Shown piece after piece: positions 6,546-64,000 of a stretch of DNA of 64,000 nt; position 1 is the first letter of the stretch, and each line of letters begins with the position of its first letter. The DNA comes from Hydrolagus colliei. Taxonomy: Eukaryota. The position numbers and the translations under genes are program-made. A model generated the notes under the pieces. That model searched no databases. It worked only from the letters and a program-made list of their open reading frames with translations, and was not told where the DNA came from. Location of the stretch: positions 248,001 to 312,000 of the forward strand of contig JAYJKW010000344.1 in NCBI GenBank assembly GCA_035084275.1, given 5' to 3'.

Positions 6546-6589
6546 AAGACGTTTATTGATCCACCCTGTTTTGCGATGACTGAGACTAA

Positions 6590-21297: not shown

Positions 21298-22575
21298 ACT
21301 CTTGCCTTACAAATCTGATAGAATTTTTTGATGAGGTATCGGAATGGGTGGATAATGGTAGCGCAGTTGATGTAGTTTACATCGACTTTCAAAAGGCATT
21401 TGACAAAGTGCCACATGAGAGACGTATGATGAAATTAAAGGCCCATGGCGTAAAAGGGACAGTGGCAGCGTGGATCCACAACTGGCTGCGAGACAGAAAG
21501 CAGAGAGTTGTAGTGAGCGGCTGTTTTTCAGATTGGAGGGAAGTGAGCAATGGTGTGCCACAGGGATCAGTTTTGGGACCATTGCTGTTTGTAATCTACA
21601 TCAATGATCTGGACTTGGGTGTACGGAGTACAGTTTCCAAGTTTGCAGATGACACTAAGTTAGGGAGAATAGTAAACAGTGAGGAGGATATTAGCCATCT
21701 GCAGGAGGATATAGACAAATTGGTAAAGTGGGCAGACACATGGCAGATGAAGTTTAATGCAGAGAAGTGTGAGGTGATGCATTTTGGGAGAAGAAATGAA
21801 GGGAGGCAATATAGGCTAGATAGTACAATTTTAAATGGTGAGAAGGAACAGAGAGACCTGAGGATTTGTGTTAGTGACTCGTTGAAGGTAGCAAGACAGG
21901 TAGACAAGGCTGGTAAGAAGGCATATGGGATACTAGGCTTTATAAATAGGGGTATAGAGTACAAAAGTCAGGAAGTGCTGACTAACCTCTATAGGACTTT
22001 GGTGAGGCCTCAGCTGGAATACTGTGTTCAATGCTGGTCACCACACTACAGAAAGGATGCGAAGGCATTGGAAAGGGTACAACGAAGATTTACTAGGATG
22101 GTGCCAGGATTGAGGGACTTCAGCTATGAGGAGAGGCTAGATAGGCTAGGGTTATTCTCTCTGGAGCAGAGAAGATTGAGGGGAGACCTAATAGAGGTTT
22201 ATAATATCATGAGGGGTTTCGACAGGGCAAATAGAGAAAAACTATTTCCACTCGTGGGTGCATCTGTGACTCGTGGTCACAGATTTAAAATAGTTTCAAG
22301 GCGCAGTAGAGGGGAGCTGAGGAGAAATTTTTTCACTCAGCGAGTTGTTCGAATCTGGAATGCAATGCCTGAAAAGGTGGTGGAGGCTGATTCGATAACA
22401 ACTTTTAAAAGGGAATTAGATCTTTATTTAGGGAGAACGGGTCTATTAGGCTATGGGGAGCGGGCAGGGCAGTGGGATTGAATCGCTCTTTTCAAAGAGC
22501 CGGCACAGACTAGATGGGCCGAATGGCCTCCTTTTGTGCCGTAAAATTCTATGATTCTATGATTCTATTCTATGT
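21298..22575 (+). mobile_element. CR1 LINE, 5'-truncated, with an uninterrupted RT C-terminal ORF (21348..22481) and (attctatg)n tail
   Basis: SCLTNLIEFFDEV, VYIDFQKAFDKVPH, GVPQGSVLGPLLF, SKFADDTKL, RRLRGDLIEVY; 3' UTR hairpin and octamer tail. Confidence 0.97.
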
Positions 22576-22889
22576 CATTTTGTTTAAAGTGTTGTCTGAA
22601 GATCACTTGAGTGGTCACCCTTCCCAAATCTAGAGCTGTTTGTTACCCTTGTCTTACATCCCTACCTGGTCAGCCGGCTCCCAGACTTCGGCTGCCATCT
22701 TTAACGTAAAGAATAACATTGCCTTTCGACCCAATCCGCTCGCAACCCACGCCCCCTCCCACCACTTTTGCTGACCTGCACTCCACGCTATGAAACAAGT
22801 GAAAATGTTCACCTTTAATCTGATTGGAACTGTGTAAGCGACAGAGAGAGAGTGCTTGTGAGACTATCTTTAATATGTTTTAATTCCAG

Positions 22890-23174
22890 ATCCGCTCCAC
22901 AAACCCACCATTTCCCTGAAACCACATTTCCCGGTGATTGTGAGCGGTGACAATGCGGTGATCTCGTGTTCTGGGAACTATCCTGGCAGCAACTTCTCTT
23001 TATACAGAGACGGCGAGTTTATCACATCACAAACTGCTAGAAATAGTAACAACACAGCCACATTCATCCCATTGGAGATCAGTGCAGGAAATTACACATG
23101 TAAATATACCACACAAAAAGGCAGCCGAGATTTCACATCTCCAGACAGCGAACGACTGGGAATCACTGTCTTGG
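22890..23174 (+). CDS. LRC-type (LILR/FCAR/GP6/OSCAR-like) C2 Ig domain exon D1
   Basis: ttccag acceptor, gtaag donor, 285 nt, phase 1-1: DPLHKPTISLKPHFPVIVSGDNAVISCSGNYPGSNFSLYRDGE...AGNYTCKY...SPDSERLGITVL. It has KP-x-I-S-L, two Cys, F-x-L-x-R-D-G in place of the canonical Trp, and a C-terminal S-xx-S-xx-L-x-I-x-V. Confidence 0.9.
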
Positions 23175-23379
23175 GTAAGAGTTCAGTAAAATCACACACA
23201 ATAACCTACTTTGTTTTTAAAATTTCCAGCAGCTCTTTCTGTCACCAATCTTTACACCATCGATCAACTTTCCATGTTGTCTCCTCGAGTTGTTTGTAGC
23301 CGGGTAAAAACTCAATAAAACAGTTTCCAAACCCCCAACTACCGAGTGACAGCCAAGCAGCTCAATGCCTGTGTCCCCT

Positions 23380-29899: not shown

Positions 29900-31800
29900 A
29901 ATCATAGAATTGTATGGCACAACAGGAGGCCATTAGGACCATCTATCATGCGTCGGCTCTTTGAAAAGACCAACTGATACCCAGTTCCTCACTCTCTCCC
30001 CATAACCTTACAGACTCGTTCTTCCTAAATAAATATTGGATTATCTTTTAAAAGCTGTTATCGAATCGGCCTCGACCACCTTTTCAGGGAATGCATTCCA
30101 GATTCGAACAACCGGCTGATTGAATACATTTCTCCTCAGCTCCCCTCTTCCTCGTTTTGAAACTATATTAAATCTGTAACAACGAAACAGAGATTCGCGC
30201 ACCAGTGGCAACAGTTTTTCCTTATTCACCCTGGCGAATCCTATGATGATTTTTTAAACCTCTATCAGGTTTTATAAACCTCTATTAGGTCTCTGTTGTA
30301 GAGAAAATCTATCTAGCCTATCTAGTCTTTCCTCATAACTGAAGTCGCCCGATACAGATACCATCCTAGTAAACCTTCTTTGCACCCTTTCCAATTCCTT
30401 AATATACTTTTTATAGTGTGGTGACCAGAATTTATCACAGTGCTACAGCTGAAAACTAACCAAAGTTTTATAGAGGTTAGTCAGCACTTCATGAATTTTG
30501 TACGTTATAGCCCCTGGGGGACACAGCGTTATCCCTCGCGTTCGGTATTGAGACCACTGATCTTCCTGATATATATTGATGATCTGGACTTGGGCATAGA
30601 GAGAATTATTTCCAAGTTTGCAGGTGATACAAAGTTAGATAGGGTAGTAAATAGAGAGGAGGACGGAAACCAACTGTAAGCAGACATTCACAGAATGGTG
30701 GAATGGGCCGACGTGTGGCAGATGGATATGAATTTGGATAAGTGTGAGGTAATACACTTAGGTTGGAAAAATTATAGGAGCCAATATAAACTTTGCAGCT
30801 CAATCTTAAGGAGGGGTGAACGTAGAGCGAGATCTGGGTGTTAAAGTAAATGAATCATTTAAGGTAGCAGGGCAGGTAGATCAGGCAGTAAAAAAGGCAT
30901 TTGGTGTGCTGAGCTTGATTAGTAGGGGCATATAGTATAAGAGTAGGAGGTTATGGTTAATCTATACAAAACATTGGTTGAGCCTCAGCTGGAGTACTGC
31001 GTCCAGCTCTGCGCACCTTACTACAGGAATGACATTAAGGCACTGTGCCATATCATTCTATGGCTCTATGTTTCAATGATTTATAAAGCCTAGTATCCCA
31101 TATGCCTTCTTAATGGCTTTGACTACCTGTCCTGTCAAGCAACTAAGAAGGCATGCGGCATGTTATTGTTCATCTCTAAAGCTATAGAGTACAAGAGCAT
31201 GGAAGTCTTGCTGCAACTATATAGGGTCCTGGTTAGACCGCATCTTGAGTATTGTGAGCAGTTTGGGTCTCCTTACTTAATAAAGGACATACCTGCCTTA
31301 GAGGGTGTGCAGCGTAGTTTCACTAGGTTAGTTACTGGGATGTGGGGACTGACCTATGAGGATAGGTTAAATAGACTAGTGTTATGTTCTCTGGAGTACA
31401 GAATAATTCGGGGAGATCTGATTGAAACATATAAGATTCTTAAAGGGGTGGATCAATTGGACAGTGAGGGACTGTTTCCCTTGTAGGAGAATCTGTAATC
31501 AGGAGACATAGTCGTAAAATTAAGGGGCAGCCTTTTAGAACAGAGTTGAGGAAAAATTTCTTCACTCAAAGGTTAGTGAATTTATGGAGTTCACTACTCC
31601 AGAATGCTGTAGATGCTCAGTCCTTGAACATATTCAAGAGTGGTACTGATAGATTTTTAACATAGAGATGTATTAGAGGATATGGGAATAGGGCAGGTAA
31701 TTAGAGTTAGACCAGAAGATCAGCCATGATCTTTTCAAATGGCGAGGCAGGCTCGATGGGCCGAATGGCCTACTCCTGCTCCTAATTATTTTGTTCTTAT
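29900..31800. mobile_element. Compound CR1 cluster (minus 3' end 29900-30490, plus RT 30500-31030, plus 3' portion of a second subfamily 31140-31800)
   Basis: SKFAGDTKL; KAIEYKSMEVLLQLYRVLVRPHLEYC; CR1 tails at both outer ends. Confidence 0.9.
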
Positions 31801-39760: not shown

Positions 39761-39910
39761 ATGGCGGCCACTCGCTGTCGGCGCTTCCTCCGGCTGTGCG
39801 AAGAGCGGCCCCTCGACAGGACCTGGGAAGGCCGCGACCTCGGCGCTTTCCTCAGGCAGCGGGTGGCGCACGTCTTCCGCGAGGGGGAGAGCGAGGGGGA
39901 GAGCGCCCAG
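39761..39910 (+). pseudogene. UQCC2: UQCC2 (complex III assembly factor) N-terminal/exon-1 fragment
   Basis: [50 protein letters not shown] vs vertebrate [46 protein letters not shown]. There is a 12-nt tandem duplication (gagggggagagc) and W>R / Y>C substitutions; no downstream exons found. Confidence 0.9.
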
Positions 39911-39917
39911 GTGCTGC

Positions 39918-40050
39918 AAGCGACGGGTCATCTCGTCGCGGGAGATCCAGACGGCGATCGGGCTGCTGCTGCTGCTGCTGCTGTGCGAGCTGGCCAGACA
40001 CACCGTGTCCGAGGTGCCAGGGCCATCACCGAGTCCCCGGGTTCATCGGC
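39918..40050 (+). pseudogene. H2B: Histone H2B C-terminal fragment
   Basis: [32 protein letters not shown](G)ARAITES vs H2B [37 protein letters not shown]; (CTG)7 expansion and a 1-nt deletion at the SEG codon. Confidence 0.88.
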
Positions 40051-41740: not shown

Positions 41741-42448
41741 TACTTTGAGGCACAGGCTAGAAGACGATCAATCGCGTTATTAAATTCTAACTCTAAGTAT
41801 TAGCATTATTTTGTATGAAAGCACTTCACATCATATACTGCTAAGTGAATTATCTGTATATTTTGGGGCTGTGTATTAAATCCCTCAATATCTTTCACAG
41901 CCTTCACTCTGTTAGCCGCCGGCCTGAAGAGCACAATGTCAATTCTTGTTGTTGTGATAGAGTGGACCACTCGCCATTGATTGGAAGTTACGACATTACC
42001 CTTATTGTGTTGTACAAACCCAGGATTATTTTGATGCCTGAGCTGTGCGACACGCAGATAATCATACCTGAAATGTGTTAATATTTCAGGACAGAGACGA
42101 TGATATGCTGTGTTAAGCCATCACATGTAATAGATAAAGGTCATCTCGGAGAAACATAGAATGTTTCCTCACAGAAAGCAGTCAGACTTATTATATCTGT
42201 GCTTGGCAATTGGTATTCATGAAAATGATTCAAACGATTTGATGCGAACATAAGTCTGTTATGTTTTAGGTTCACACAAGAGTCCAAGATCACATGGTGG
42301 ATCAGTTGTGGGATTGACAGGTATCACCCACTAACTCGGGAGCGTTTACTCCTCCGCTCTGATGTTGTTGCTATCAGTGCTCTTTAATAAGCGATGAGTG
42401 ATATTGCTGCCACAATTTGTCACAATTTTTTCTCTCCCTTTTTTTTAG

Positions 42449-43329
42449 TGAATGTTCTGGCAATCGTAATCCTGTCTAGGGGAAGGTGCGGCCTCTCGAA
42501 AGTCGTCACTTTCTATATGGAGGCGATGGCCGTGTCAGATCTAATGGTTATTATCAACGATGTGCTATTGAATCGCATCAACAACATGCATTTCCCCTTC
42601 AGCTTCTTGGCCTACACCCATGTATGCAGATTGAGAATCGTTCTGGTGGTCTCTGCCACTCTATGTTCCATTTGGCTAACAGTCGCTTTCACCTTTGATC
42701 GCTATGTCGCGATTTGTTGTCAGAAAATAAAGCAAAGATATTGCTCTGTAAAAACGGCCAGTTTGGTTATTACAACAATGTGTGTGCTCAGCTGTATGCA
42801 ATGCATTCCAATTTATTTTATTTATGTTCCGCTTGTCGTAGATACTATTCCAAAATATTGCGTTGAAAAACCCAGTTTTCACACTTCACTGTACTGGAAA
42901 TATTTTGAACGGTTGATCCGTGCGTTCAATCCTGTAATAGTATCCGTTCTCATTACCGTCGTCAACGCCCTGACTGTCAGACACATTTTAGTGGCCAACA
43001 GAGCCCGCAGGAGAATCCGCGGTGACAGCAGTGGAAATAACCAGAATGATCCCGAGATGGAGAAACGGAGAAAATCCATCATTTTGCTCTTCGCTATATC
43101 CGGCAGTTTTGTACTTTTGTGGATGACAAATGTTGTACATTCTTTAAAATGGTCAGTTGCAGACTACCAAAATATACCGACGGACATCAGCACTCCGTAT
43201 ATCGTCCAACAAACTGGATTTATGCTTCAGCTACTGAGCTCCTGTACAAACTCTTGTATCTACGTGTTGACCCAGCGCAAATTTAGAGAAGAGATCAAGA
43301 AGATTGTAAAATGCCCGTTTGCCAATTAA
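42449..43329 (+). CDS. GPR139-like class A GPCR paralog 2, main exon (open frame; first coding exon not identified)
   Basis: Polypyrimidine tract plus AG at 42447-48, phase 1: (V)NVLAIVILSRGRCGLSK...AFTFDRYVAICC...RRKSIILLFAISGSF...SSCTNSCIYVLTQRKFREEIKK*; no stops or frameshifts. Confidence 0.88.
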
Positions 43330-44400: not shown

Positions 44401-46907
44401 GACTAAGTTCAGTTACTTTTCCCACTACTCGGAAAATAAAAAATCCCCATTGTTGATCTGCAGAAATAATTGTCCGCGTGTGCAAACGAGTGATGTAGGG
44501 GAGTCCTCTTTCATGCTATTCGCGTTGGTCAATCGTGTTTGCGGAGGACGCTGTGCTTTATGTTTACATCTTGAATAAATTTATGCAACTTTTCCGGAGT
44601 TATTAATGTTATTATAATTGCCACTAGAACATTAATGTTTTATTAAGATTTATACTTTGATCGACTTACACTGGAGGAGACGGGCCCGGCGGCGCCCGCG
44701 GCCGATTCCCGCTATTTTCCGATAACAGTTACACTCAGGGTTTGCCATTTGGCTGGAAAAAAAACGGCCAAATTCGAGAAATCTGGCCTTAGACAATTTC
44801 GTATGTCCGAGAAAAACATTTATTTCCCCAAATTGATTTTGCCCTTTAACATTTGTTTGGCCGTGAAATGATTTTCTTTGGGTTTGCATTGTTTATTTTG
44901 TCTTTCTTTCTCTATGTGTTTTATGACTGGCAGATGCTGCAGAAAAATACTGAAAGCCGTTATAACTCTTCCGAAAAGTATGGGGAGAGTCGCTCTCGAG
45001 CGCTGTTCTCGAGTCATGAGGCCACGGCACAGGAACTTCATTCTCGACCTCCCCCTCCCCATAGTTTTGCAAGTAGTACGTACGCGCGTGCGCACACATT
45101 ATACTAGTACATGTATACGTACGCGCACACACACACACACATTATACTACTCCATGTATACGTACGCGCGCGCACACACACACATTATATACTATTACAC
45201 GGGCGCGCGTCGACCAAACAATCAGGTGGTGATTTGGCCGTGCCACGTGCCGCGCCGGACGTGAGTTGAGGTAGTCGTGGCTGCGTGCTCTCTGCCACAC
45301 TAACAGGCCAGTACACAGGATTCTTAATGGGGGGGGTGCGGATTGGGTAACAAGTTAAACAACGCTGAGAATTGGCGGCTCCGAGTGTGTTTGAACCAGC
45401 CTGAAAAAGACTCATAGAGTGAGATCGGGGAGAGACTCACAGACTTTCCTGATGCTAAACAAACGAATAATTATAACCAAGGCACAGTATAGCTCCACAC
45501 AACCCCTACACTGCGCTCAGTCGCAGATGTTCACCATGGAGGTCGTGCTGAGTGGGTGAGAATGAGACCATCCTTCGCTTCACTCCCTCTGTGACTCCAG
45601 CCTCTCGGTTCCATTATTCCCACGAATCCAGCGAGATCACGAAGATAAACTAGAATGGAGAACAACAACAACTGAGTACTTGGGAAATGGGAAAAGCCTT
45701 CAACATTTCTATTGCAGTGTCCTGTGCCCTGTACAAATAATACATTCCCGGTCTTTCTAGCCAAATCAGCTATTTCTGAATGCTTTTGTCCGTTTTCCCG
45801 ACGATGGGTGCTCTGCACGGTATTCTGTCTCACAAATCAATCAGCCATCCCCAGAAATGAATTAGAAATAGTCTGAAGGGTCTTTGAGGCCTCCAGCCCT
45901 GGAATCAATTGTGTACAAGATTACAGCCCCGAGGTACAAACCAAAACTATTTTGAAAAGTGGTCGCTTGAGAGATGGATCTGGATGACGTACACTCACAA
46001 ACTTTCAATAGATGGAGCATTCACTGTAGGCAAGATCTAACCTTGCGCGTTTATTAACAGCTATTTCAGGCAGGCATCATAGGCAGAGAGAGGCATGTGA
46101 CACAATCTACATCCTTCTGTATTCAAAAATGCTATGATTCTATAATTCTGCGGGCAGTTGAGCCCCAGTCGCAAAGAGGATATTCCTGGTTTGGGTAATC
46201 TGGATAACAAAAGCACCGGTAATGCTTGTCATTAATTGCTCTCAATACTATTCTTTTGGGTTTAGATTGCTAAAATCCAACGGTATCCAAACGCATAGTC
46301 ATGCCAGCAAACATTATACACCTTCTGTAATTGGCGAGCCAGTATATATCTCTACAGTAATAGAGTGCTCATTCCATACCAGTAAATGGGAATTTACATG
46401 TTTAGGTGAGTTGCATTGCAATATCATGGTTTAGTTTGGATCGTGTCAATCATTCCAACATGCTGCACCGCTCAGGAAAATGAAAATGAGTGTGTCTTGT
46501 ATAGATTTCACGTCAAGCCAAGAAAACGTGGAAAGTGAGTGGGATATCTCGCGAGTGATGTGCCTTCGTTGCTGAGGATGGCTCTGTGTGTACCAAAGAG
46601 AGAACCTGTAATGTGCTCCAGTAATGCGGGTGGAGCTGAAGTTACATGAATGGCTGTCATGTTCCTCCAGTTCTCAGAGTGGAGCTGCTCGCGTTTAGAA
46701 TTCCCTCCCGTTTCCCTTTGCTTCCCGCTCCTTTCCAATCTTCAGATCGCACCTGAAGATATTTATTGAAAGTCACCCTTACGTTCACTTCCCCCACTCC
46801 CCTTGGCTCGGCTTAAGAATATGCCACTGTCACGCGCTCTCAGATTCACTGGCATGGAGGTCGTGATGTACATTTAAGTTGCTGTTGTTGTTGTGTGTGA
46901 AAGAGGC

Positions 46908-47344
46908 TGCAATGTTCCCGCAGTGCTGAGGGTGGCGCTGTGTGTGTGTCTGTGTTTGTTTGTGTGATACAGACCCTGCAATGTTCCTGCAGTCCTCAGG
47001 GTGGAGCTGAGTGTGTGTGTGTGAGAGAGAGGGAGCGTCTAATGTTCCCGCAGTGTTGAGGGTGGCTTTGTGTGTGTGCGAGAGAGCCTGTAGTGCTCTC
47101 GCAAGTGCTGAAGGTGGCGCTGTGTGTGAGTGTGTGTGTGTGAGAGAGAGAGAGAGAGAAAGGGGGCGTGTAGTGTTCCAGCAGTGCTGAGGGTGGCGCT
47201 GTGTGTGTGTGAGTGTGAGAGAGAGAGAGCGTGTAGTGTTCCCGCAGTGCTGAGGGAGGCGCTGTGTGTGTGTGTGAGAGAGAGAGCGTGTAGTGTTCCC
47301 GCAGTGCTGAGGGAGGCGCTGTGTGTGTGGGTGAGAGAGAGAGA
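46908..47344. repeat. Compound minisatellite, 7 units of a ~35-bp core joined by (TG)n(AG)n linkers
   Basis: Core gtagtgttcccgcagtgctgagggtggcgctgtg repeated with variants. Confidence 0.9.
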
Positions 47345-48169
47345 AATAATAATAACATTACATTTCTTTCATTTGTTTTATTGTGAGAAACGGAGAGAGC
47401 GAGAAGCTGTAACGTGCCTCCAGTGCGTTTTCAAACTATATTTGGCGTTTTCAAGCTATAATTACCATCTAATTGTGTATGCAACAGAGAAGTGTGTGGA
47501 GAACCTGGATTTATGTATGTACAATTTATGTTTGTACCGATGAAGCTGATTGACAGGTTTCAAACCGTGTTAAACAAGAGTTGCCACCATAGCTGAGCTA
47601 CAGAGAGAAACAGTGGCAGTAGAGAGGGTAATGCACTCTGGGATGGTGCCCTTCATGAAGCTGTCGCTGTTTGTTGCGCATGTCCTTGGCATTAGGGATC
47701 AGAAGTTGCGATTAGCATAGAGTGAAGTTTTCAGAGAGCATTAGAGTTAGGGTGAGGACAACCTTATTCTATCCTTCGTCATCTCTCGGCTGGAATACTC
47801 CAACACCCTTCTCTTCGGTCTTTCCTCCTTCAATATTCACAAATTTCCTCCCATCTAAAGCTCCACCACTTGCATTCCTTGCTACACTAAACTCTGCACA
47901 CCGGTTACCCAATTCATTGTCACCTATACTATCGCCCTATTAAAGAGTCAGCCTCCAAGACCCTCAATATGTTGCTTATATCCATCTACGCCTTTGCCAA
48001 ACCCTAGCTTTCCAAACGCGCCTCTCCTCACAGCAAAACCCACTCCCTCTGGCGTAACCAATTGATCGAGGGGAGCAACAACTGCATCAAAATCAATTAC
48101 TTTTTGAAAAAAAAGTAATCCAGAGACTTACGTAAAAGTGAGCCAAACTTGGAGCAACTAAATGGTGAA

Positions 48170-49223: not shown

Positions 49224-49497
49224 NNNNNNNNNNNNNNNNNNNNNNNNNNNNNNNNNNNNNNNNNNNNNNNNNNNNNNNNNNNNNNNNNNNNNNNNNNNNN
49301 NNNNNNNNNNNNNNNNNNNNNNNNNNNNNNNNNNNNNNNNNNNNNNNNNNNNNNNNNNNNNNNNNNNNNNNNNNNNNNNNNNNNNNNNNNNNNNNNNNNN
49401 NNNNNNNNNNNNNNNNNNNNNNNNNNNNNNNNNNNNNNNNNNNNNNNNNNNNNNNNNNNNNNNNNNNNNNNNNNNNNNNNNNNNNNNNNNNNNNNNN
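49224..49497. other. Assembly gap (274 N)
   Basis: Run of N. Confidence 1.
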
Positions 49498-52400: not shown

Positions 52401-53074
52401 GAGCGGTGTGTTACTCTATTAGAACAGCCGTGCATCTGAAGCAGTAACTGGGTGTGGAGATGATCACTGGGGGAATAGAAGCAGCTGCCGGTTAAAGAAG
52501 TGAAGGATCTACAGAAGCGGAAATGTTGCTGCACATTAATAATCTCAGCAAAACCCGAGGTGAAGGTGGACGGTTCAAATCAAAAACTTTTGAAAAGCGA
52601 TAAGATTTGAGGGAATCTGAATAATTTGGTGAGCAGGAGAAAAGGCACAATTGACACAATAATGTAAAGAAAGCTTTGATACTTTGCACCGCATTTATTA
52701 TTTCGTATTGATGCAGTGGACAGTATTTTCAGACGTTATGAAACAGGAGCAGATAAAAGAAAACACGAAGCTGCTGATTAAAATCAAAGACAAATCCACA
52801 ACAGCCATTTTATTTCTTCAACATTACGCCACTCAAATGTTGAACAGCAAATACAAAATATTAAAAAATGTCCGCCGTTACCCATTTTTTTCATTACTGC
52901 TCAAGTCAAATTAGCAAGTAAGGATTATTAAAACAAGAAGAGTCATTATAATTGTTGTATTTGCATAATACAAAGGTTAATTCCAGCGAAGATAGACATC
53001 ATATTTTCGGTCGCCATATATTGCTTCTCAACATCAGCAAATGAGGCACCTGGGTGCAGCTGATATTCCGAAAT

Positions 53075-53083
53075 TCATTTTAC
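53075..53083 (-). CDS. IGHM: IgH TM2 exon (VK*)
   Basis: tttacag|GTA AAA TGA; phase 0, matching the TM1 donor. Confidence 0.85.
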   Translation of the reverse strand, partial: VK

Positions 53084-53755
53084 CTGTAAAATATGAGTAG
53101 ATATATAATTTAAAGGTTCTGCTTGGGTCAGCAGTTATTGATGACGGTTGCGTTTATTGATATATTTTTTACAATATACACACAGATGCATACAAACACA
53201 CACACCACACACACATGCAGACAGAAATACAAACACAGTCAGACACACAAACAGACACAGACACACACACACACAGACAGAAATACAAACACACAGACAG
53301 ACATAAACAGACACACACACAAGCTCAAACGATTCTGTGTGAATTGATTTTTGTCTGCTGGTGACTGACGCAAGTCGCCCTTTGCCAAGTTTTGCATACA
53401 AACACATATACCACAGATATATGCGGACAGAAATACAAAATACACATCTTAAAGCCAGGCTTTAAAGCTTCCACTAGATATTCATAGAACTATATATTCT
53501 GCAAATTACGGTTGGATTTTGCCTCTATCGATAACCAGTGAGCATATATCAGCAGTGATTATTGGTATGTAAGGGTAATCGGATATTTTCATCAGCAACA
53601 CAGAGTCTGGACACAATGATCCAGCCTTGTACAGACATGGGGATTAACCCAGCAGAGTGGACGCAATGCGCATCACTATCAGTACTCTCAGGAAACAAGT
53701 GTTTAACAGCATTTGTTAGATCACATAATGTCGTCAATGAATTTAATATCCTCAC

Positions 53756-53886
53756 CTTAATTATAGTGACGGTGGCGCTGTAGAATATACTCAGGAAGAA
53801 GAGGATGATGAATGTGGAAGCAGTAGGCCAGAGATTCTCACTTTCATCTTGTTGAAAACTTTCCACTATAAACTCGGTTGGGAAAT
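53756..53886 (-). CDS. IGHM: IgH TM1 exon
   Basis: ctcccag|(D)FPTEFIVESFQQDESENLWPTASTFIILFFLSIFYSATVTIIK|gtgagg; conserved antigen-receptor TM (CART) motif. Confidence 0.96.
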
Positions 53887-55994
53887 CTGGGAGGTTAGCA
53901 AAGAAGAAAATATTCAGAGGGAACACAAACTTGAGTTTAGTGTTATTTTTACTCTTTGTTTATTAATGACTATACGGTTTCCAATTGCGCTCCCTTACAT
54001 TGAACCAAATGGGCCCAAAGACACTTGCACACTTATCGACTCACACAGCACCATTTATGTGCATCCTGCCAATTAATACAAGCATTAACATTTCAGAGAA
54101 ATTAAGGAGAAATGGTTAATAATGTTTGTGGATATCAATTATATAATCCATGAAATAAATTTGGGGTCACTTTGGGAAACTTTAATTTGTAGAATACCAG
54201 AAGGATGAATATCCTCACATTGAGACTTTGCTGGTAGAAAATGGAAGAACTATGGCAATCCTCCAATTTCACCTTTCCAACTGTTTTCTTGTCACTAACC
54301 AAATACCATTTCAGATTGCGTCACTTTGTTATTGGGTTGAATAAACATATATTCCAAAAGATCTCTGTACAAAACACCAGCTCTAACTTTGTACGTTGCG
54401 TTTATTTTCCTGGGTGTCAGAGTTTCAAAATCTATCCTGCATTTTAACAGGTTTTATTCGATACTCTCCTCATTTTTTCTTTTACCTTCACTTTTTACGA
54501 GAAAAACTACAATGATTGAAGTTGTTCCGCATCGCTATAATGCCAATCACAGGCATCATTTTCATGCTCTGTGTGAAATAGTCCTAAACCTACATTGTAG
54601 GAGTGTGGAGAAGCCTGTGTTTAAGTGACTCTCTTGCTGTACCCTCTTTGTATAATAAAGTGTATGGAGCACCACACCGTACTCCAACCACATCCCTAAT
54701 AACGCTATTTCAATTAACTGCGCGAAAAGCGCGATATCATTTTAATTTTCCAAATCTTCCCCATTGCACTGAAACAATATGAATCCTTTGGAGAACATAC
54801 TTCCAAAATATACTTGAAATAAGCAGTTGTTTCAATATTCGACTGCATTTCTAAATTTCTACCAACAAAGCTAACGGTCTGATATTACGAAATGTGCCCA
54901 CTTCATTCCTCATTGTGAACCTTACCCCTGTTACATCCAGAACAATGTGTTTACAAGTGGTACCATGGTTAGTTAAAAATCGTTAATATTGTTTCAAAGT
55001 TAGTGCTGTGTGTGAGGTGGATTGTGTATTTTTTTGCTGATATGTCTGGATGGGCCTTGGCCTGGGCGTTTGTGAACATTTTGGGTGCGGGCTGTGTGCT
55101 TGTGCTGATGTATAGGTGGCTGTGTGTGCCTTTGCGCCCAGAAGGATGCAATGTTTGTGTGGGTCCGTTTGAGTGTGAGATTGTGTGGGCCTGGGTGTGT
55201 GATTGCGTATGAGCATTTGTGCTTGGGTATGTGAGAATGGGGGTCAGGTGGGTGTGATTATGTGTGAGTGCGTGTACACCTAATGTGTGTGAGTGGGTGT
55301 GATTCGGTAAATGTGTGTGGGAGCGAATTGGCCTGGATTGACGTGAATGTGTGAGTGTGTGTGGTTCCAGTTAGATTTGAGGGTATTAAGCTATGTGTAA
55401 GCCTGGGTTGGTGAAAGTTTGAGTGAATGTGCTTAGATGAGTGTCTGGTTGGCAGTGAGTTTGTGTCGGTGTGTGGAGTGGGTGAGCATGGCCCTCACTG
55501 CATTTGAGTTTGCACGATTCTCTTTGTTTATGAAGTAAAAGTCTGGGGAAGTCTATGTTGAAGTGAATATCTTCCTGTACTCAGATCTGCTTGTGTGGAA
55601 GAATCTGCAATTTTACATGAATTCAAGCAGTATAGCCCATAAACATTGTTACGTGTGGAACAATCATTGTGAATGATAAAGAAAATATCATGAAAGGGAA
55701 CGTGCGCAGAGGTCCCGCCCAATTCCAAAACAAGCTGCAAATCAACCCAAACTGAGTTTGCATTGTCGCAAGTGATGTGGAATAATTTGTGTGTTTTGAA
55801 TTAACGTTTTGGAGGTTAATTGATACGTGTCAAAACCCATCCTCATGCATGCTCATACCAAACTGACATTGCTACCAGCTTCATAATAACATTGCATCAA
55901 AGATAATATGTATTAATCCTCACTCTGGAAATCATCTGCATCATTAATTTTAAATCATCCCCTCCGTACGTGACTCAGTAATGCAACAATGATC

Positions 55995-56000
55995 TTTATT
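55995..56000 (-). terminator. Candidate polyadenylation signal of the secretory IgH transcript
   Basis: AATAAA on the minus strand ~90 nt after the secretory stop codon. Confidence 0.7.
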
Positions 56001-56088
56001 TAAATTACCTTTCATGAAACCAAACTGACAATGAAATGGTGTGGAGACAGGTGCACACAGCAATATGCATAATTGTATTGGTAGATGC

Positions 56089-56480
56089 TTATTGACATGC
56101 ATTCACAGTGTCCATCAGGACAAGGGAAATGTTTACAAAACTTGGTTTACCGCTGGATTTGTTAACGGTTCTGGTCAAGGTCTTCAGTGCGAAGGTTTCA
56201 TGTCCGACAATACAGGAGTAGGAGAAGCCTCTACCCCACTCTCCAGCTGAGATGGTCAACATGCTGTACATGGAGTAGTTGCGATCTGCGCTATCTGCCA
56301 TCAACTCAGTGTTCTTGTAGTTGCTGACATCTATCTCCTTGTCATCAACAGTCCATTGCACAAAGATCTCTTTGGGAGCGAAGTCCTTCACCAGGCAGGT
56401 GAGGGTGACAGACTGCTGAGCAGTCAATTCTGCTGCCGAGGGGAGGAGGATGTACACTGATGGTTGTTTTGTGTGGTCAA
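56089..56480 (-). CDS. IGHM: IgM-type CH4 exon with secretory tailpiece (internal donor for the TM form after 56151)
   Basis: (V)DHTKQPSVYILLPSAAELTAQQSVTLTCLVKDFAPKEIFVQW...YSCIVGHET...VNKSSG|KPSFVNISLVLMDTVNACQ*; tailpiece N-I-S sequon and penultimate Cys. Confidence 0.97.
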
Positions 56481-56915
56481 CTGTGGGACAAACACAATCA
56501 AATCAATACATTAACGTAATCAATCAAATAATACGTTCATGCGCAACATGCAGTTGAACAAATTGAGAATGTCTGTGTTCAGTGGTGTTTTCTGAAATTT
56601 CCTCATATAACTTTATTAGGTCCACCCAGAGAAAACTGGTTTAGGTGTTTCCAACTAAACTCATTGAGAACATTTCTCACATTCTCCAAGAAAAATAATT
56701 TATTTATTTATTGTGGATATTATTCACTGAATAATAAGGTATTAAACTACTTATCAACTTATATAAAGATAGGTTTTCTGGCCTCTTTGATAGGCAACAA
56801 ATCCACAGATAGATGGAAAGACAATACAGTCCAGAGACAGTTACTAATTGTTTTCACGATTATTTCCATTGTCTACATTCTAAAACCACGTATTTCCCCA
56901 AATCTAGCTCCATAC

Positions 56916-57224
56916 CTGTCCTCTGAAATATCTTTTCTCTGACAGGAGTTGGCATATCTTCGTGGCTGGCAACGCAGAAGAACTCCTTCCCACTCTTCCA
57001 GTCTTCTGTAGAAACGTTTAATTCACTCATCACTTCATGACGCTCAGTGACAGATGGTTTCCCATATCCAGATAGTTGTTTCTCTCCTTGTGTCCAAGAC
57101 ACGTTGACATCAAGTGGTGCATTATCCACTACACAGGTCAGTGTTACAGAGGATTCCATCAACACCTGTTTTGGTGAAAGTGGAAGGAAATAGATCTTGA
57201 CATTCCCAGTGGGATCCTCACAGT
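56916..57224 (-). CDS. IGHM: IgM-type CH3 exon
   Basis: ttctag|(D)CEDPTGNVKIYFLPLSPKQVLMESSVTLTCVV...VSW...WKSGKEFFCVASHEDMPTPVREKIFQRT G|gtatgg; 309 nt, phase 1-1. Confidence 0.96.
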
Positions 57225-57948
57225 CTAGAAAAGGAAAAGAAAGCTTATTCACAAATATCAGCCAATAGGCATGTTTCGTATTCGTTCAGGCTGATCAATA
57301 GTGTACACACACATTATCAGCTTCTGGATGAGATAAATACAGACTGTTGTTTACCAACGCAAGGATCGTTTGGTGTTGGAATAATGTACTGGAAAAGACA
57401 TGGTTATGGTTAGTCCTGACCCTATCCCTAGCGAATCTCAGAAGCCCTGCATGTTAATTGGCCGATTGATATCGCATATCCATCGTCTGATAATGAACAA
57501 GTATTAAGCAAATACGTTCGATGAGTAGTACCTCAGCAGTGTGTGTCATCTGCATACCTTCTTGGATTACACAAATAGTCTGTTTGTTTTCAGAGAGTTC
57601 AGTGAAACTGGAGATTGGGGAAATGTGTGGAATGTGAGAATTGCATCGTCGGTCACATGGACCTGTGAGAGGTATGATATGTGCCCTTGAGAAGCAGATC
57701 AGTAAATGACTGACATAGTGTGTCTGCTTGGCCACCCGCTGATACGTGAAGAGGATCAGGGCCTGATTTCCTCATGTTGTGCAGGTCAACAAAACACTGG
57801 ATCAATGCTCACATGTGCAATGTCCTCAGTGAAATAACAAAAGGGGGTGAAATGAAATGAGCTATTTGATCTCATAGGAGTGGATAATGGGAAGCATTAC
57901 CAGAAGCACATTGTTGCCATGATTCTCAACTGGTTCTTTGCTTCATAC

Positions 57949-58278
57949 CTGAGGACTTGGTGATGTTCTTGACAATGTATGTCTGTGTTGGGCTATGGGA
58001 AACCTGGCAAGTGTAAACCGAGCCACTCCTCCACTCTCTGGCGAGGACAGTCAGCCGGCTGCTGGTGGTGAATGTCCCATTGTCTTCTTTAACGGAGGGA
58101 GAGGTCTCAACCCCCGAGGTGATGGGCTCCCAGTCCTTCAACCATTTAACTGTCAGTTCATCTGGACGGAAGCCAGATATCAAACAGACAGCAATGCCTG
58201 GTTTGTGGATTGCAATATCTTCAGGAGATGGCTGAGTGAGGATAACAACTGGGGGCGATGGCTCCTGAATTTCATCAA
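57949..58278 (-). CDS. IGHM: IgM-type CH2 exon (copy b)
   Basis: tttcag|(V)DEIQEPSPPVVILTQPSPEDIAIHKPGIAVCLISGFRPDELTVKWLKD...YTCQVSHSPTQTYIVKNITKSS G|gtatg; 330 nt, phase 1-1. Confidence 0.96.
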
Positions 58279-59281
58279 CTGAAATGCATGAAATAATAGG
58301 TTATGTTTTGTGCAGTTCTTATTAATATTGAAGCAAACGTTGATTTCAGCCCGAGTGTGGACACCTCTCTGTTGGAGCTTTATATATTTGTATCTTCCCT
58401 GTAAAGATAGTCTTATCATTCTCACCTTACAAAATTCTAATCTCCTCAATCTATTCATCTGACTTAGTGAACTAAATGTTAAAGTGGGCCTGGAGTTGAA
58501 AACTCTTCTGCTCTCCTTTACCCGATTCCTACCACTGAACATTCCTTACATCTTGCACTCCAAAGCTATGTAGCTCCCCTTCTCTATGTCCCACCTTCTC
58601 ACTGTCTAGTTTCTGTTGTTCCTGTGTCGTGTCACATTATTCATCTATCTTCCCCAGTCCATCTCAACTTCGTCGAGTACTTTGTATCCCGTTCATATAT
58701 GCCCTTCATCTGCGGATAAAGCAGCATTCGAGAAATTAGTGTAATTTGGGAATTACAGATTCTCTGTGATGGGATTTCATTTAATCCAGTGAAGAAAAGT
58801 GACATACTCACATCTGCAATAGAGAATTCTACAATCCAGACTAATGATAATAATATTCCTTATATAGCTACAGAAAATTTTAATGTTTTTGAGGCGTCTA
58901 AAGGTGCTTACCAGAATAGACCAGGAAACAAAATTCGATGTACATTTTATTCGCAAAATGCGGCAGCCAAGGGCTCACTGCAGTGTCCCATGAATTTGGT
59001 GCATTGAAGTCATTGATTTTTATTTGAATAATAATTAGCTCCCAGAAATGCGATACACCAATGGACTGACCACAGGTTTCATACTTTCTTCCAGGTGTTC
59101 AGATATATGTGTAGTAACTAAACTAGCCCAATCTTTTGTCCTGCCTGGGAATCAAGCCAAAAATTCTAGTTTGAGATGTGAATGCTCTAACCACTGATCT
59201 CCAGGACTCCACATGTAAGCAATACAGGAAACTCAGAGCCACAACATTGCCACATGCATCAGCTGGCGCTGCGCCCCCTAC

Positions 59282-59605
59282 CTGTGGGCATGGTGATGCT
59301 CTTGACAATGGTGGTGTCGGTGGGACTGTGGGACACCTGGCATATGTAAACCCCGCCATTCCTCCATTCTCTGGCGGGGACAGTCAGCCGGCTACTGACG
59401 CTGAATGTCCCATTGTCTTCTTTAACCGAGGGAGAGGTCACCACACCTGAGGGCACGGGCTGCCAGTTCTTGAGCCACTTAACACTCAGTTTATCGGGAT
59501 GGAAATGGAATATTAAGCAAACAGCTGTGGCCGGTCTGACCATTGCCATGTCTTCAGGGGAAGGATGTAGGAGGACAACAACTGGGGGTGACGGTTTTAC
59601 AATAT
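59282..59605 (-). CDS. IGHM: CH2-like exon (copy a) in the position normally held by CH1
   Basis: ttgcag|(D)IVKPSPPVVVLLHPSPEDMAMVRPATAVCLIFHFHPDKLSVKWLKN...YICQVSHSPTDTTIVKSITMPT G|gtagg; 324 nt; 73/104 aa identical to copy b by hand alignment. Confidence 0.95.
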
Positions 59606-61070
59606 CTGCAACAAATTAAATAAAAGTTTATGATTTGTTCCATAGAAGTACATTTTGTTGTGCGATACATAATGATAGTGAAATGCCAGCCATGATGTGG
59701 AAATTCCTCTCTCATCGGCATACCTTTTTCAATCTTCCCTATAAAAGAAAGCCTTTAGAAAGATGAATAATGCGATCTCTTCAATCAATTTACCTGATGT
59801 TTTAAACTAAACTCTATAGAGGGCTTGCATTTGAGAACACTTCTATTCTCCCTGCCCACGTACATCTCATTCAGCATTCCTCAATTATTGATCTTTAAAG
59901 ATAACTCAGTGTCATTCTGTGAGTCCTGCTTCCCCACTGTCTGGTGAGTGTTGTGTCTGTTCCTTTTCAAGCTGCTCGCATATCTATCCCACTCCAACTT
60001 AACAGGTCATGTCCTTCCTACCATTGGTCTATATATGACGATTAGCTCCAGATATGGAGGTATATATGCGTGTGTGTGCATTAGTGCGTGTGTAAGTGCA
60101 TATAAGTACTACTAACTGTAGAGGTTTTCAACCGAGGCCGTGGCTGCTTGCAGTTGAAAATAAAATATCCCATGACGCTAAACTAAAACAGAATGTATTC
60201 TCTCTCGCTCCCTCTCTATCACTCTGTCTCGTCATACTAGTCAACAATCCCCCCCAAATATTATTTCTCAATCACTCTACCTTGTTTTTGTGACAATGGT
60301 CTGTGCAAAAGGCTTTTGCGCTTTGCTTAGAAAATACAGACAATCCACTTTGCATTATGTCCTGCGTTTTACCACCACGCTAGGCATCGTATCTAATGCA
60401 AACATTATAAAATGACGTATGTGCACATGACAGCGTGCATAACTGCACCGAATGACAACAGTTGACTTCATTTATTTGTACTATTCATCATAGTTTGTTT
60501 GGATGCAGCTGTAACTTATTTGTTGTGCGTTGAGGTGGTGTTAAGCGGGAGGTAGGGGTGGGGGGGCAGGAGGTTAATTGCCTCCAAGGTGTTACATTTG
60601 GCATTTTGCATTTAAATGTACTTCAAATTGAAGCTCCCAACAATGTAGTTTTAGCTGTGAAAACCTGTGTGAAAGAAACTGCTGATCAAACAGCAAAGCA
60701 TTATCTGCCTGCCTGTCTATGTACTGCTTGATCTCACACTCAGTTCTCCGAGATGGATTGTAACTTCTTCTCGATCTTGTGTCATATTTCAGATGTCAAT
60801 CAGTGAAAAAAAGGCAGTGATGACTGTCAGTGTCTGTCTGTGACCCTGGAGTCAGTGACGCTGAATCGACAGAGAAGCAGCTCAAAGCCACCAATTTTTG
60901 GACTGTGTTTCTATAGGTACATTGGGATCATAAATCTGACTCTGACCAATAAGATTTCAGAATTCAAAATCACACCGAATTTTTAATTGCCACTAAAATT
61001 CAAATTTAGCTTCAATTTTGAAAACGTCTATTAATTTGCTAAAATAAACTAATGTCAAGGTTCCTCAGAG

Positions 61071-62337
61071 ATGCAAATAATTTTACACCTAAAATTAAAA
61101 ACGTGAGCAATACTTGTTTTGGCGTTTGCTTATTCAATTGACCATCTTCAGACTGTTGACTCAATTACCGATCAATTGCGACCAGATTCCCGCAGCGTTG
61201 TGTTAAAATAGTTCATCAATTGTTTATACTGATAATAAATTGGGCATTTGATTTAGAGCCTTATTATGTCTTCGTGAGATCTGAAAGCGCTTGATGGAAT
61301 ATACTGTGAAGTTAACTGGCAGCTCGTTTGGGGAAGAAAAATATCTGCCTGAATGTTGACTAAGATTGGTCCATTTTAGCTCTTTTGCCTACTCGAGATG
61401 CCATATAATGGTTCAGTGTTTTACATGAGAAATAAAGGAGAGTCATCAGTGTTGTGCCGGGGACGAACCTCTCACAGAGAATGCTGTCTGACAGTTAGGG
61501 TGATACTGATTAGTGGAACCTGAAGCAGCTGCTAGCACAGCGATAAACGGAGACACAGAAACGTTCCAACACATTTACGTGTATTTTTGCCACACACCTG
61601 CACCGAAATGGTTATATAACGGCAGAGGCTGAGGTTAAATAACAATGGATGGCGGAGACGCTGCCTTGATTGACAAGCCAAGCAGTTGAGCAGTCACGCG
61701 TTGCGAACATGATGAAAGAATAGTAATTGTCAGCGTTTGGTTTAGTTCATTACCACGCGTTTGAGTGGTCTCATACCATTTAACAGAATATACTGTAAAC
61801 TCAAATGTCAGTGTGATACTTGGGCGAATTTCGAGAGCGCATTTCATACAGCATTGACCAACAAACAGTTATGGGTTGAATGAAGAATTAGTATTCTCAT
61901 CATTATGGTTATTAAGGGATTATTACCAACAAAGAAAGAGGTTCCTACCTACTGGTAGGTAAACAGATTTGTGTGTGTGTGGAGCAAGAAAAGTTGCCTA
62001 ATGTTTCTTCATACCTCAGAAACAAATCTGGTTATTCCCGCTTCTCCACCAGGCTACAGGAATCACAGAACTTACATAATTCGTGTTTACTTCACAGTCT
62101 GTATAAAGCTGAATTGTGGTAGATTGCTGAGTTAGTATTTACATATCCTGTTTACATGTTGCAGCCATGTCCCTAAGGCTGACACGCAGAGGCAGGTGCT
62201 ACAAACACTGAACAACAAGCGTCGCTGTCGTTTGTGCAGCTGTTTCCTGCCCTTGCGGTCACTGTCTTGTTGGTTATAAATACACTGAATAAAATTATGA
62301 TAAAACTGAAGATTATGGTCACTCCTGCCATGCAAAT
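61071..62337. promoter_or_regulatory. Two perfect octamer motifs (ATGCAAAT at 61071 and 62330) upstream of the first C exon
   Basis: Motifs read directly; an enhancer role is inference only. Confidence 0.3.
61720..61900 (-). mobile_element. tRNA-derived SINE, 3' part
   Basis: Reverse complement has body tggtcaatgctgtatgaaatgcgctctcgaaattcgccc and cagtatattctgttaaatggtatgagacc. Confidence 0.55.
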
Positions 62338-64000
62338 CCTCAAGTAATAACAAACACTTTGGGATCATTTATCTGTACCTTAATTTTTTTGAATAGTATA
62401 ATAATCTGAAATTAAATTTGCTTTGGCAATTCAGTTTTTCATAAGATCTCAGGAAAACTTGTTTCAGAAATCAAATTGAGTTTACCATTTATTCACATGG
62501 AATGTTATGCTTTAACAGAATGTAATCTCCTCGCGGCCAGAGACTATGTTGATTCCTCGGTCTGTTGGAAGATGTTAACGAAAACAAACCTACATATTAC
62601 TCTGTTCTACCGCTGGTTCTGAGGGTTAAACATAAACCGAGCTCTCAGCCTCTCTCTGCACAGTCAGTAATCTCAATTTCAGCTGTTTGCAATTACGTTG
62701 TTCAATGCCGTCTAATGAAGTCTCACAAGTAATCACAGAGCAAACCATCACACCCCGAACACAAACAGATTCCATCCAATAATCCACAAATTACTCAATC
62801 TTCGCTTATTCTCAGCCCGAAGCACTCAGTAACTGAACAGTCAACACACACACTCCCTTTCCGCATCACACATGAAGTTCAGTACATTCAGCACAGTCAG
62901 AATTCCTTGCAGCACAACTAGTTACACAACATAATCTAATCATGTAATTAGAGGGAAATGAGATACCGTTTCCTTTCATCCCCAGCTCTGCAGGACTTTG
63001 AGCTAATCATCTCTGAAATCATTAGTTTGTGACTGATGCTGTTGTGTGACAAACATCTCACAAGCAGCTGCTACTTTTGCACTCCAGCATGGAAGTCACA
63101 GATTAGCGTTTGTTTATTGAACACCATCTCTGTTTTTTCCCCTACACAGCAGTTAATTTTAAGCAGAAAGCTGATGATTATAGATGAACAACGCTCTCTT
63201 GTGTGACAGAACATTGCGAGGAAGCACAATTCACTCAATCGCTGTAAAAATAAATTACCGTTAATTCTGAACTGCTAGTGTCACAGTTAAAATCGAGATT
63301 GGTGTGTGGGGGCCGCTGAGGAAATGAAACTATGAAACACATATTAATGTCTATATTAATTCGAACTAAAACCTTCACACTTATTTCAGTATGAACCGTG
63401 CACGTTGATTTGCTGTTGATTTCAGTTACTTACCAGCAACATGAAACAAAAATAAGATAACATTCCCAACAATCATCCCATTGCATTCAATCTACTGGTT
63501 TGTTAGTTGTAGAACAATTGAATCAAATATTGATTTTAAAAAATAGACACTAATCTCACATTTGGAGGAAATTTTATCTGTAATTTAAGATTTTGCTGTA
63601 GTGTATAAGATTACTTTGTATACTTAGAATTTGAACATTTGATGCTGAGTAACTCTGGTAAACCTGTTTCAAACCGAATTTAACAAGTACCCACATTTTT
63701 ACGGGATTTTACGCGTTACCAATCAATAAAAACATCCCCTATTATTTTGCTAACATATGTAAAGCATGAGGCGCTGCATTTTTAGTCACAATCGAGCATT
63801 ATGATCCGGCATTACTCGCAGATGGATATTCGTTGAATGAATAATGCACAAGTTCAAAGCACAAACAGCCAAATCACTTTTAGCAGAGAAAAAACTCCGA
63901 AATAGTCCGTTCATTAAATCAAATGTCTGTCAAACCGAACAAAACAAGCATATAAACAGAAAAGTTAAGAGCAGTGAGTGAGTTTTTGTCTCTTTCTTAC

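Follow-up and report, generated by a model that had tools for sequence, protein, structure and literature searches.

A window of 64,000 nucleotides from the ratfish Hydrolagus colliei was analysed, and we consider it probable that the region described here comprises the whole constant part of a heavy-chain cluster derived from IgM and without CH1, of the type belonging to chimaeras (Holocephali). The same layout is known from both ratfish and elephant fish, where it has been described as probably giving a heavy-chain-only antibody, and the present gene is an additional, unannotated copy. That CH1 has been replaced and that the antibody is light-chain-free are well-founded inferences, the V-D-J segments and the splice from J to the first constant exon falling outside the window.

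Organization of the constant region

The constant-region half of a cartilaginous-fish IgM gene occupies positions 53075-59605 on the minus strand, in six clean exons. The limits proposed in an earlier note on this DNA were exact, coinciding with the TM2 stop codon and the start of the first constant exon. The features, in the direction of transcription, are:

59606-64000, minus strand: partial intron 5' of exon A, presumed J-to-C intron; GC 0.387, AT-rich, mostly unique, one small repeat
59282-59605, minus strand: exon A, first of the constant exons and a duplicate of CH2 type ("CH2 prime"); 324 nt, phase 1 on both sides
57949-58278, minus strand: exon B, resident CH2 exon; 330 nt, phase 1 on both sides, CH2 profile 160.2 bits
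56916-57224, minus strand: Cmu3 exon; 309 nt, CH3 profile 148 bits, starts D-C-E-D
56089-56480, minus strand: Cmu4 with secretory tailpiece GKPSFVNISLVLMDTVNACQ and TAA stop; CH4 profile 196.9 bits
56145-56151, minus strand: membrane-form splice donor within Cmu4, AGCG/gtaaac; exon part ends at 56151
55995-56000, minus strand: AATAAA, about 90 nt past the secretory stop codon
53756-53886, minus strand: TM1, acidic spacer and transmembrane helix ending in ENLWPTASTFIILFFLSIFYSATVTIIK; 70% identity to the TM region of C. milii P0011
53075-53083, minus strand: TM2, Val-Lys-stop (GTA AAA TGA)
52809-52814, minus strand: first AATAAA past the membrane-form stop codon

All exons have polypyrimidine-AG acceptors, and all but the terminal ones have GT donors; the four C-domain exons are joined in phase 1, and the TM1-TM2 junction is in phase 0. 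The C-domain introns other than the one 5' of exon A measure 0.4-1.0 kb, that between exons A and B being 1.0 kb. After splicing, the reading frames of the secretory (450 aa) and membrane forms are open, the junction from the donor at 56151 to TM1 keeping the frame, and the 1.35 kb of coding sequence contains neither a stop nor a frameshift. Ig C1-set folds are too similar to tell CH1 from CH2. Pfam recognised four C1-set domains in the gene, and a sequence search of the PDB found it colinear with the human IgM constant region 8gzn, a generic match that does not discriminate CH1 from CH2. The window also contains an intact GPCR gene from a huge GPR139-like expansion, with a best identity of 57-59% to C. 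milii.

Both ends of the gene are intact, as the earlier note had stated, with open frames and the two exons TM1 and TM2. The N-I-S sequon and the penultimate cysteine are both present in the tailpiece GKPSFVNISLVLMDTVNACQ, which is identical, letter for letter, to the tail of the C. milii secretory IgM P0001. The transmembrane segment is of the conserved mu type, and polyadenylation signals follow both the secretory and the membrane end. The additional cysteine at the start of Cmu3 (D-C-E-D) is likely to form a bridge between heavy chains.

Identity of exon A

Judged by its sequence, exon A is a CH2 paralog and not a CH1. With domain profiles built without the window's own sequences, it scored 154.9 bits for CH2, against 59.9 for CH1, 49.9 for CH4 and 38.7 for CH3. 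Its identity to 30 CH2 domains was 42-74%, compared to 26-37% for 18 CH1 domains. In a tree of all four domains, exons A and B fell in the CH2 clade and not with CH1 (SH-aLRT 96), and a tree placed both in the holocephalan CH2 clade with support of 100/100; profiles and trees assigned the Cmu3 and Cmu4 exons to the CH3 and CH4 clades of holocephalan IgM. When exon A was regrafted on the CH1 stem with the rest of the tree fixed, the likelihood dropped by 12.2 lnL and the placement was rejected (p-AU 0.021). AU tests in which exon A was constrained to the CH1 clade gave p values of 0.53 and 0.67, with slightly better likelihoods, but the constraint can be satisfied by moving the long CH1 stem onto the exon A branch inside the CH2 clade; these tests are uninformative here because they probe the rooting of CH1 and not the identity of exon A. 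Placing exon A as sister to all CH2 domains gave a p-AU of 0.41 and was not rejected, so that its place inside the CH2 clade is not fixed by the trees.

The cysteines agree with what had been read from the letters alone, namely that exon A offers none for bonding a light chain: it has only two, at positions 30 and 89, both intradomain, whereas the CH1 domains of conventional relatives have an additional N-terminal cysteine, as in LLPYCGQ or LLPTCGQ. Exon A has one sequon, NGT; the NIT sequon retained in exon B has been lost from it. Its first codon would become Asp (G+AT) once a J segment supplies its last base.

Duplication of CH2 and relatives in Callorhinchus milii

The first two constant exons had been taken for CH2-type paralogs, about 70% identical, with intact phase-1 splice sites. 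This description holds: the AG and GT sites were confirmed, and exons A and B are 69% identical in protein over 107 aligned codons (70-71% by tblastn, E 1e-47) and 76.6% identical in DNA. The pairwise dN/dS of 0.33, in which constraint is not assignable to either copy alone, together with the dS of 0.61, indicates an ancient duplication on which purifying selection has, on average, been acting. The flanks are homologous at 59606-59638 versus 58279-58311 and at 59775-59851 versus 58440-58516 (76% and 73%), suggesting that the tandem copy of CH2 took in at least a few hundred bases of the upstream intron. The terminal branch of exon A is 0.43, the longest in the Callorhinchus-type CH2 set, compared to 0.21 for exon B; since the NIT sequon has also been lost, constraint may have been relaxed on exon A alone.

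The closest relatives of the gene are IgM sequences of Callorhinchus milii, mostly computational gene models from UniProt, with 60-83% identity per domain, the upper value being reached in CH4. Exon A is closest to P0047, an exon-A-like exon with a similar read-through into the intron (74%), and exon B to P0048 (76%) and P0004 (75%). The tandem arrangement recurs in P0030, which begins with the end of a domain of the P0047 type and continues with a second CH2, and in P0051, where the end of one CH2 joins the start of another without an intron. In P0015, J (WGQGTKVTVTD) is fused straight to a CH2-type domain. The gene is as distant from each C. milii paralog as these are from one another (63-81%). 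Neither exon A nor exon B groups with its positional counterpart in the trees; with about 110 columns, a sister relationship of A and B, or of A and P0047, was neither rejected nor supported. A search with the exon A reading frame returned five proteins, four of them from C. milii, and the ratfish COS5 sequence was not among these matches. No identical or near-identical protein or transcript of the gene was found among 5.8 billion proteins, the best match being 83% over one domain.

Upstream sequence and alternative explanations

The absence of a recognisable CH1 in the 4.4 kb upstream of exon A, claimed in the earlier note, was borne out: tblastn with 46 relatives found no CH1-like sequence in 59606-64000 or in the rest of the window, and the best non-exon match of the CH1 profile, searched in six frames over the whole window, reached 8.8 bits (E 0.16). 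V, J and RSS were likewise found neither in this 4.4 kb nor elsewhere in the window, and the V-D-J end of the gene would have to be sought past base 64000.

Cartilaginous fish have many IgH clusters, some of them pseudogenes, and the constant region might be a non-functional orphan, its V-D-J missing, pseudogenised or out of frame, giving no antibody or sterile transcripts. The lack of V, D, J and RSS in the 4.4 kb upstream would fit this, as would the lack of a near-identical expressed sequence in the protein search and the roughly twofold faster evolution of exon A relative to exon B. We nevertheless think it unlikely. All six exons and every splice site are intact, the whole 1.35 kb has stayed open, and dN/dS is low over a deep duplication. 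In these clusters the J-C intron normally runs to several kb, and it is therefore expected that J is not reached within 4.4 kb.

A conventional, light-chain-pairing mu chain of five domains (CH1-CH2a-CH2b-CH3-CH4), with its CH1 more than 4.4 kb upstream and outside the window, has clearly less to recommend it, and we hold it to be very improbable. Only the limit of the window leaves room for it, and nothing in the sequence favours it. The remaining C-domain introns are much shorter than the distance it demands (0.4-1.0 kb), the proximal intron 5' of exon A is a copy of that 5' of exon B, P0015 goes directly from J to a CH2-type domain, and the ratfish gene outlined in a passage of PMC3149040 pairs the loss of CH1 with a duplication of CH2. 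Least credible of all is an assembly artefact that would have placed CH2 exons of separate IgM clusters side by side. A multi-copy family such as the IgM clusters is difficult to assemble, and the window does contain one N gap, at 49224-49497; this gap, however, lies about 3.6 kb past the last exon and about 8.5 kb from exon B, outside the stretch that separates the two CH2 exons. The two exons moreover differ by 23% in DNA and have distinct flanks, and P0030, P0051 and the ratfish literature independently back the tandem arrangement.

Proposed model and significance

For a CH1-less heavy-chain cluster, we propose a tandem duplication of an ancestral CH2 exon, of which exon A is the copy, now adjoining the J-C intron in the usual place of CH1. 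A V-D-J unit upstream of base 64000 would be spliced through its J to exon A, with ...TVT-D-IVKPSPP as the resulting junction. Since exon A is of the CH2 type and lacks the CH1 cysteine, a light chain would find no site for covalent docking on this chain. CH1 is the domain by which BiP retains heavy chains without a partner in the ER. With neither this domain nor the docking site present, export as a heavy-chain-only molecule becomes possible. The additional cysteine of Cmu3 would bridge two chains, an unaltered tailpiece would leave IgM-style polymerisation possible, and the membrane form would still pair with the signalling chains of the B-cell receptor. Light-chain-free function and polymerisation are thus what we infer from the gene's sequence.

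Heavy-chain-only antibodies have independent origins in camelids, in sharks (IgNAR) and, by genetic evidence, in chimaeras, whose version is the least studied and the sole one built on a polymerisable IgM. The present gene opens no new question. As an additional intact cluster it is a further data point on how the class is constructed: the CH2 copy appears to have moved with its upstream intron, the heavy-heavy cysteine, the tailpiece and the B-cell-receptor anchor are retained, and the relocated domain has about twice the divergence. Peptides and primers specific to exon A are targets for a protein-level test, which a 2011 review called still missing. A bolder proposal, which we regard as doubtful, is that the product is secreted as a tailpiece-linked heavy-chain-only polymer and that the CH2 duplication is separate from the one in C. 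milii and ratfish, or extensively reshaped relative to it; the latter part is suggested by the failure of exons A and B to pair with their positional counterparts. If true, the polymer would be a multivalent array of single-domain binding sites, and CH1-less IgM would have originated or been remodelled repeatedly within chimaeras. We know of no natural antibody shown at the protein level to be a heavy-chain-only polymer.

Comparison with known systems

With conventional chondrichthyan IgM the gene shares Cmu2, Cmu3, Cmu4, the tailpiece, the TM exons and the cluster-type genomic style. A conventional H2L2 IgM within the window was rejected, there being no CH1 or its light-chain cysteine and an additional CH2 being present. 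The identity to the conventional IgM P0016, the one H. colliei sequence retrieved, ranges from 54-57% (CH2) to 65% (CH4), below that to C. milii sequences. The IgM1gj of the nurse shark is a short IgM with three C domains, a missing CH2 and a germline-joined V (PMC5192425); a gene of this type was rejected as well, as CH2 is here duplicated, not missing.

Shark IgNAR is, like the chimaera type, a heavy-chain-only receptor of cartilaginous fish arranged in clusters. Its C domains number five and are related to IgW, and its V is of the NAR type. An identity with IgNAR was discarded, the four C domains of the present gene all falling in the CH2, CH3 and CH4 clades of IgM; its identity to the IgW-like protein P0039 is 28-38%. 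IgNAR is reported to be absent from C. milii (PMC3964593).

Camelid IgG2 and IgG3 resemble the present gene in being derived from the animal's own conventional isotype by removal of CH1. In camelids the CH1 exon stays in the genome and is skipped through a donor-site mutation, whereas the present gene has no CH1 exon in the window and the CH2 copy keeps the number of C domains at four. The isotype also differs, being a polymerisable IgM here and IgG in camelids. The positions of GLEW in conventional VH are those altered in camelid VHH, and the V regions of C. milii P0015 and P0043 have QREN/QQEN there; the V domains of these relatives thus have hydrophilic changes at the same framework-2 positions as the camelid ones.

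The nearest known systems are those of the chimaeras themselves. The CH1-less IgM cluster of ratfish, "COS5", is said to have been described by Rast et al. 1998 (Immunogenetics 47:234), and Anumukonda et al. 2022 (Eur J Immunol 52:247) reportedly, to go by the title, treat IgM-derived heavy-chain-only genes of the elephant fish. By its published description, on which our comparison rests, COS5 lacks CH1 and has a duplicated CH2 instead, as in the present gene. The portion of PMC3149040 devoted to ratfish gives the IgM gene as having lost CH1 and duplicated CH2, and adds that the protein had not yet been examined; there and in a passage of PMC2150980, which speaks of "the specialized H chain (COS5) in ratfish", a light-chain-free heavy-chain dimer is proposed. 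The earlier note was thus right that such a cluster is known in ratfish, but its word "rare" undersells how well known the architecture has become, as the 2022 paper and reviews indicate: an excerpt of the review PMC11659936 lists "holocephalin IgM HCAbs" as an established candidate heavy-chain-only antibody, and one of PMC12227049 (refs 73, 74, the latter being Anumukonda et al.) cites the literature on chimaera heavy-chain-only IgM. The IgM-derived heavy-chain-only genes of C. milii offer evidence for both a J-to-CH2 junction and a tandem CH2-CH2, and their secretory tail is identical to that of the present gene; P0015, P0018 and P0019 have one CH2 before CH3, whereas the present gene has two.

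A complete constant-region gene on the minus strand

Translation of the region and inspection of its junctions resolved a constant-region gene of six clean exons on the minus strand.

Exons of the constant-region gene, from translation and splice junctions
59282-59605, minus strand: exon A, the first constant exon
57949-58278, minus strand: exon B, the resident CH2 exon
56916-57224, minus strand: Cmu3
56089-56480, minus strand: Cmu4, secretory tail and stop
53756-53886, minus strand: TM1
53075-53083, minus strand: TM2 (Val-Lys-stop)

At every splice acceptor of the gene a pyrimidine-rich tract precedes the AG, every donor is GT, and the four C-domain exons are joined in phase 1. An internal donor in Cmu4 (AGCG/gtaaac, exon part up to 56151) gives an in-frame junction with TM1. 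The secretory frame (450 aa) and the membrane frame are both open, and AATAAA signals lie downstream of both ends. The secretory tail reads GKPSFVNISLVLMDTVNACQ, the same sequence as in Callorhinchus milii secretory IgM. The encoded chain contains four C1-set domains according to Pfam, and in a sequence comparison with the PDB it was colinear with the human IgM constant region. These exon ends coincide exactly with the span 53075-59605 proposed in an earlier note, which had also been right about the intact phase-1 splice sites and the intact secretory and membrane ends. The TM1-TM2 intron harbors an (AC)n-rich microsatellite at 53192-53321, and the only N run in the window (49224-49497, 274 bases) lies about 3.6 kb past TM2, the last exon of the gene.

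Exon A encodes a CH2 domain

At the protein level, exons A and B share 69% identity over 107 aligned codons (70-71% by tblastn, E 1e-47) and at the DNA level 76.6%, with pairwise dS of 0.61, dN of 0.20 and dN/dS of 0.33. Their upstream introns are homologous for about 33 nt next to the exon, and a 77-nt homologous block is found at the same offset farther upstream in both, indicating that the duplication took intron sequence along. Exon A was scored against CH1, CH2, CH3 and CH4 profiles, built from 18-39 chondrichthyan domains with the window's own sequences excluded. It obtained 154.9 bits with CH2, compared to 59.9 with CH1, 49.9 with CH4 and 38.7 with CH3; the scores of exon B were 160.2 with CH2 and 62.7 with CH1. 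Pairwise identity of exon A ranges from 42% to 74% with CH2 domains and from 26% to 37% with CH1 domains. In the trees, CH1 formed a separate clade (SH-aLRT 100), and both exons fell within the CH2 clade (SH-aLRT 96), inside a holocephalan CH2 group (100/100). Regrafting exon A to the CH1 stem, with the remaining tree fixed, led to a loss of 12.2 log-likelihood units (p-AU 0.021). Looser AU tests did not reject a grouping of A with CH1, but the constraint could be satisfied by the long CH1 stem sliding onto the branch of A, and we therefore regard them as uninformative. The description of the two exons as roughly 70% identical CH2-type paralogs is thus accurate, and the phylogeny of both exons against CH1 and CH2, which the note had proposed, agrees with it.

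The intradomain pair are the only cysteines in exon A, confirming that the first exon lacks a cysteine for light-chain bonding; the conventional CH1 of C. milii, of H. colliei and of sharks has an extra N-terminal one in all cases. The NGT sequon is kept in exon A, and the NIT sequon of exon B is lost in it. Cmu3 begins with D-C-E-D, and an extra cysteine also opens CH3 in several C. milii sequences. Judging from sequence, the cysteine at the start of Cmu3 is the obvious candidate for a heavy-heavy bridge.

The upstream region and the nature of the gene

Motif and RSS scans revealed no CH1, V, J or recombination signal in 59606-64000 or elsewhere in the window. Neither tblastn with 46 relatives nor CH1 and V profiles run on all six frames detected any such segment in the window, and a heptamer scan of the upstream 4.4 kb returned zero heptamers. 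The claim that no CH1-like exon is present in these 4.4 kb was therefore correct. The 59606-64000 stretch is AT-rich and nearly repeat-free. In chondrichthyan IgM clusters the J-C introns are usually several kb long, and a V-D-J unit would thus be expected just past the end of the window.

The gene is intact and its first constant domain is a CH2, so the observation behind the earlier note was sound, and we uphold its interpretation of an IgM-type heavy chain with CH1 replaced by a second CH2, a candidate light-chain-free antibody. It is probable that the gene represents the constant portion of a CH1-less IgM cluster of the chimaera type. An upstream J would then splice to exon A, and the chain may escape light-chain dependence because CH1 and its cysteine are absent. 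Heavy chains could be bridged via the Cmu3 cysteine, the intact tailpiece would allow polymerisation, and the conserved TM would be compatible with B-cell-receptor function.

Given a window empty of V and J on one side, and two open frames with clean junctions on the other, an orphan or pseudogenised cluster seems unlikely. A conventional five-domain chain would need its CH1 far upstream, beyond the 4.4 kb that profile and tblastn searches found empty, and we find this more improbable still. A mis-assembly could in principle have juxtaposed two CH2 exons; with the same tandem arrangement supported in C. milii, we give it very little credence.

Other features of the window

An intact single-exon rhodopsin-family GPCR of 311 aa is encoded at 42394-43326 (plus strand; Pfam 7tm_1, 75.5 bits). 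Its family is the "probable GPR139" expansion, which is very large in chondrichthyans (2030 matches at E<=1e-20); the top identity of this receptor is just 57-59%, in C. milii, and no exact copy is on record. A second GPR139-like receptor at 13004-13928 (plus) is spread over two overlapping frames, 13004-13585 and 13482-13928, which match 7tm_1 in its N-terminal and C-terminal half; a pseudogene with a frameshift, or else an error in sequencing, is the probable explanation.

At 21297-22478 (plus) lies a 394-aa ORF for a LINE-type reverse transcriptase (Pfam RVT_1, 88.8 bits). Its C-terminal motif, …YEDRLNxLGLxSLxxRR…, recurs in shorter fragments at 6495-6977 and 31094-31483 (both plus), indicating several copies of one retroelement family in the window. 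Adjoining this LINE copy downstream is a lone Ig-like domain ORF at 22874-23296 (plus; Pfam Ig_2/Ig_3, E 1.6e-8). It contains GNYTC, a motif typical of domains of the leukocyte or Fc-receptor-like kind. The window opens with a weak CH3-profile match at 333-401 (minus; 11.6 bits, E 0.019), which may be either a chance hit or what is left of a further Ig-like exon. Within a GC-rich block at 38-41 kb, a stretch at 39800-40000 (plus) containing …ARHTVSE… resembles by eye the C-terminal part of histone H2B; the enclosing ORF had no Pfam match, and the stretch may be a decayed fragment. Apart from the microsatellite in the TM1-TM2 intron, two low-complexity tracts were noted, a proline-codon-rich block (16500-17400) and a degenerate tandem repeat (46800-47550).

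Comparison with known CH1-less clusters

The top matches of the gene are all C. milii IgM sequences (60-83% per domain), followed by H. colliei conventional IgM (54-65%) and sharks (43-56%). Its distance to each C. milii paralog is about that among those paralogs themselves (63-81%). By these similarities the sequence would come from a chimaera, probably Callorhinchus or a near relative, and the gene would be either a divergent cluster that lacks annotation or the ortholog in a sister species. Several C. milii entries, designated here by P-numbers, display the same design. P0047 has an exon-A-like exon, 74% identical to exon A; P0030 starts in the last part of a P0047-type domain and continues with a second CH2; P0051 has an intron-free junction from CH2 end to CH2 start; and in P0015 a J (…WGQGTKVTVTD) is fused directly to a CH2-type domain. 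The first two bases of exon A, AT, with a G from J would give Asp, as after TVT in P0015. At the position of GLEW in a conventional VH, the V regions of P0015 and P0043 have QREN and QQEN, and the same framework-2 positions are altered in camelid VHH. As computational models from other loci, these entries are evidence for the class and not for the V of the gene described here. Within the exon B-Cmu3 intron, the translation of 57562-57705 (minus) shares 37.5% identity over 48 aa (E 3e-4) with a P0030 segment that likewise represents intron read-through. The cluster can thus still be aligned to C. milii clusters in its non-coding parts, which hints at a close source species or very slow divergence.

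The CH1-less architecture has already been published for ratfish, where the cluster with a duplicated CH2 in place of CH1 was called "COS5" (PMC2150980). The earlier note had called it known but rare: it is indeed known, and better known than this wording implies. A 2024 review places "holocephalin IgM HCAbs" alongside IgNAR (PMC11659936), and a 2025 paper uses a "single-domain Hydrolagus IgM V" and cites Anumukonda et al. (PMC12227049). The gene described here is an additional member of this published architecture.
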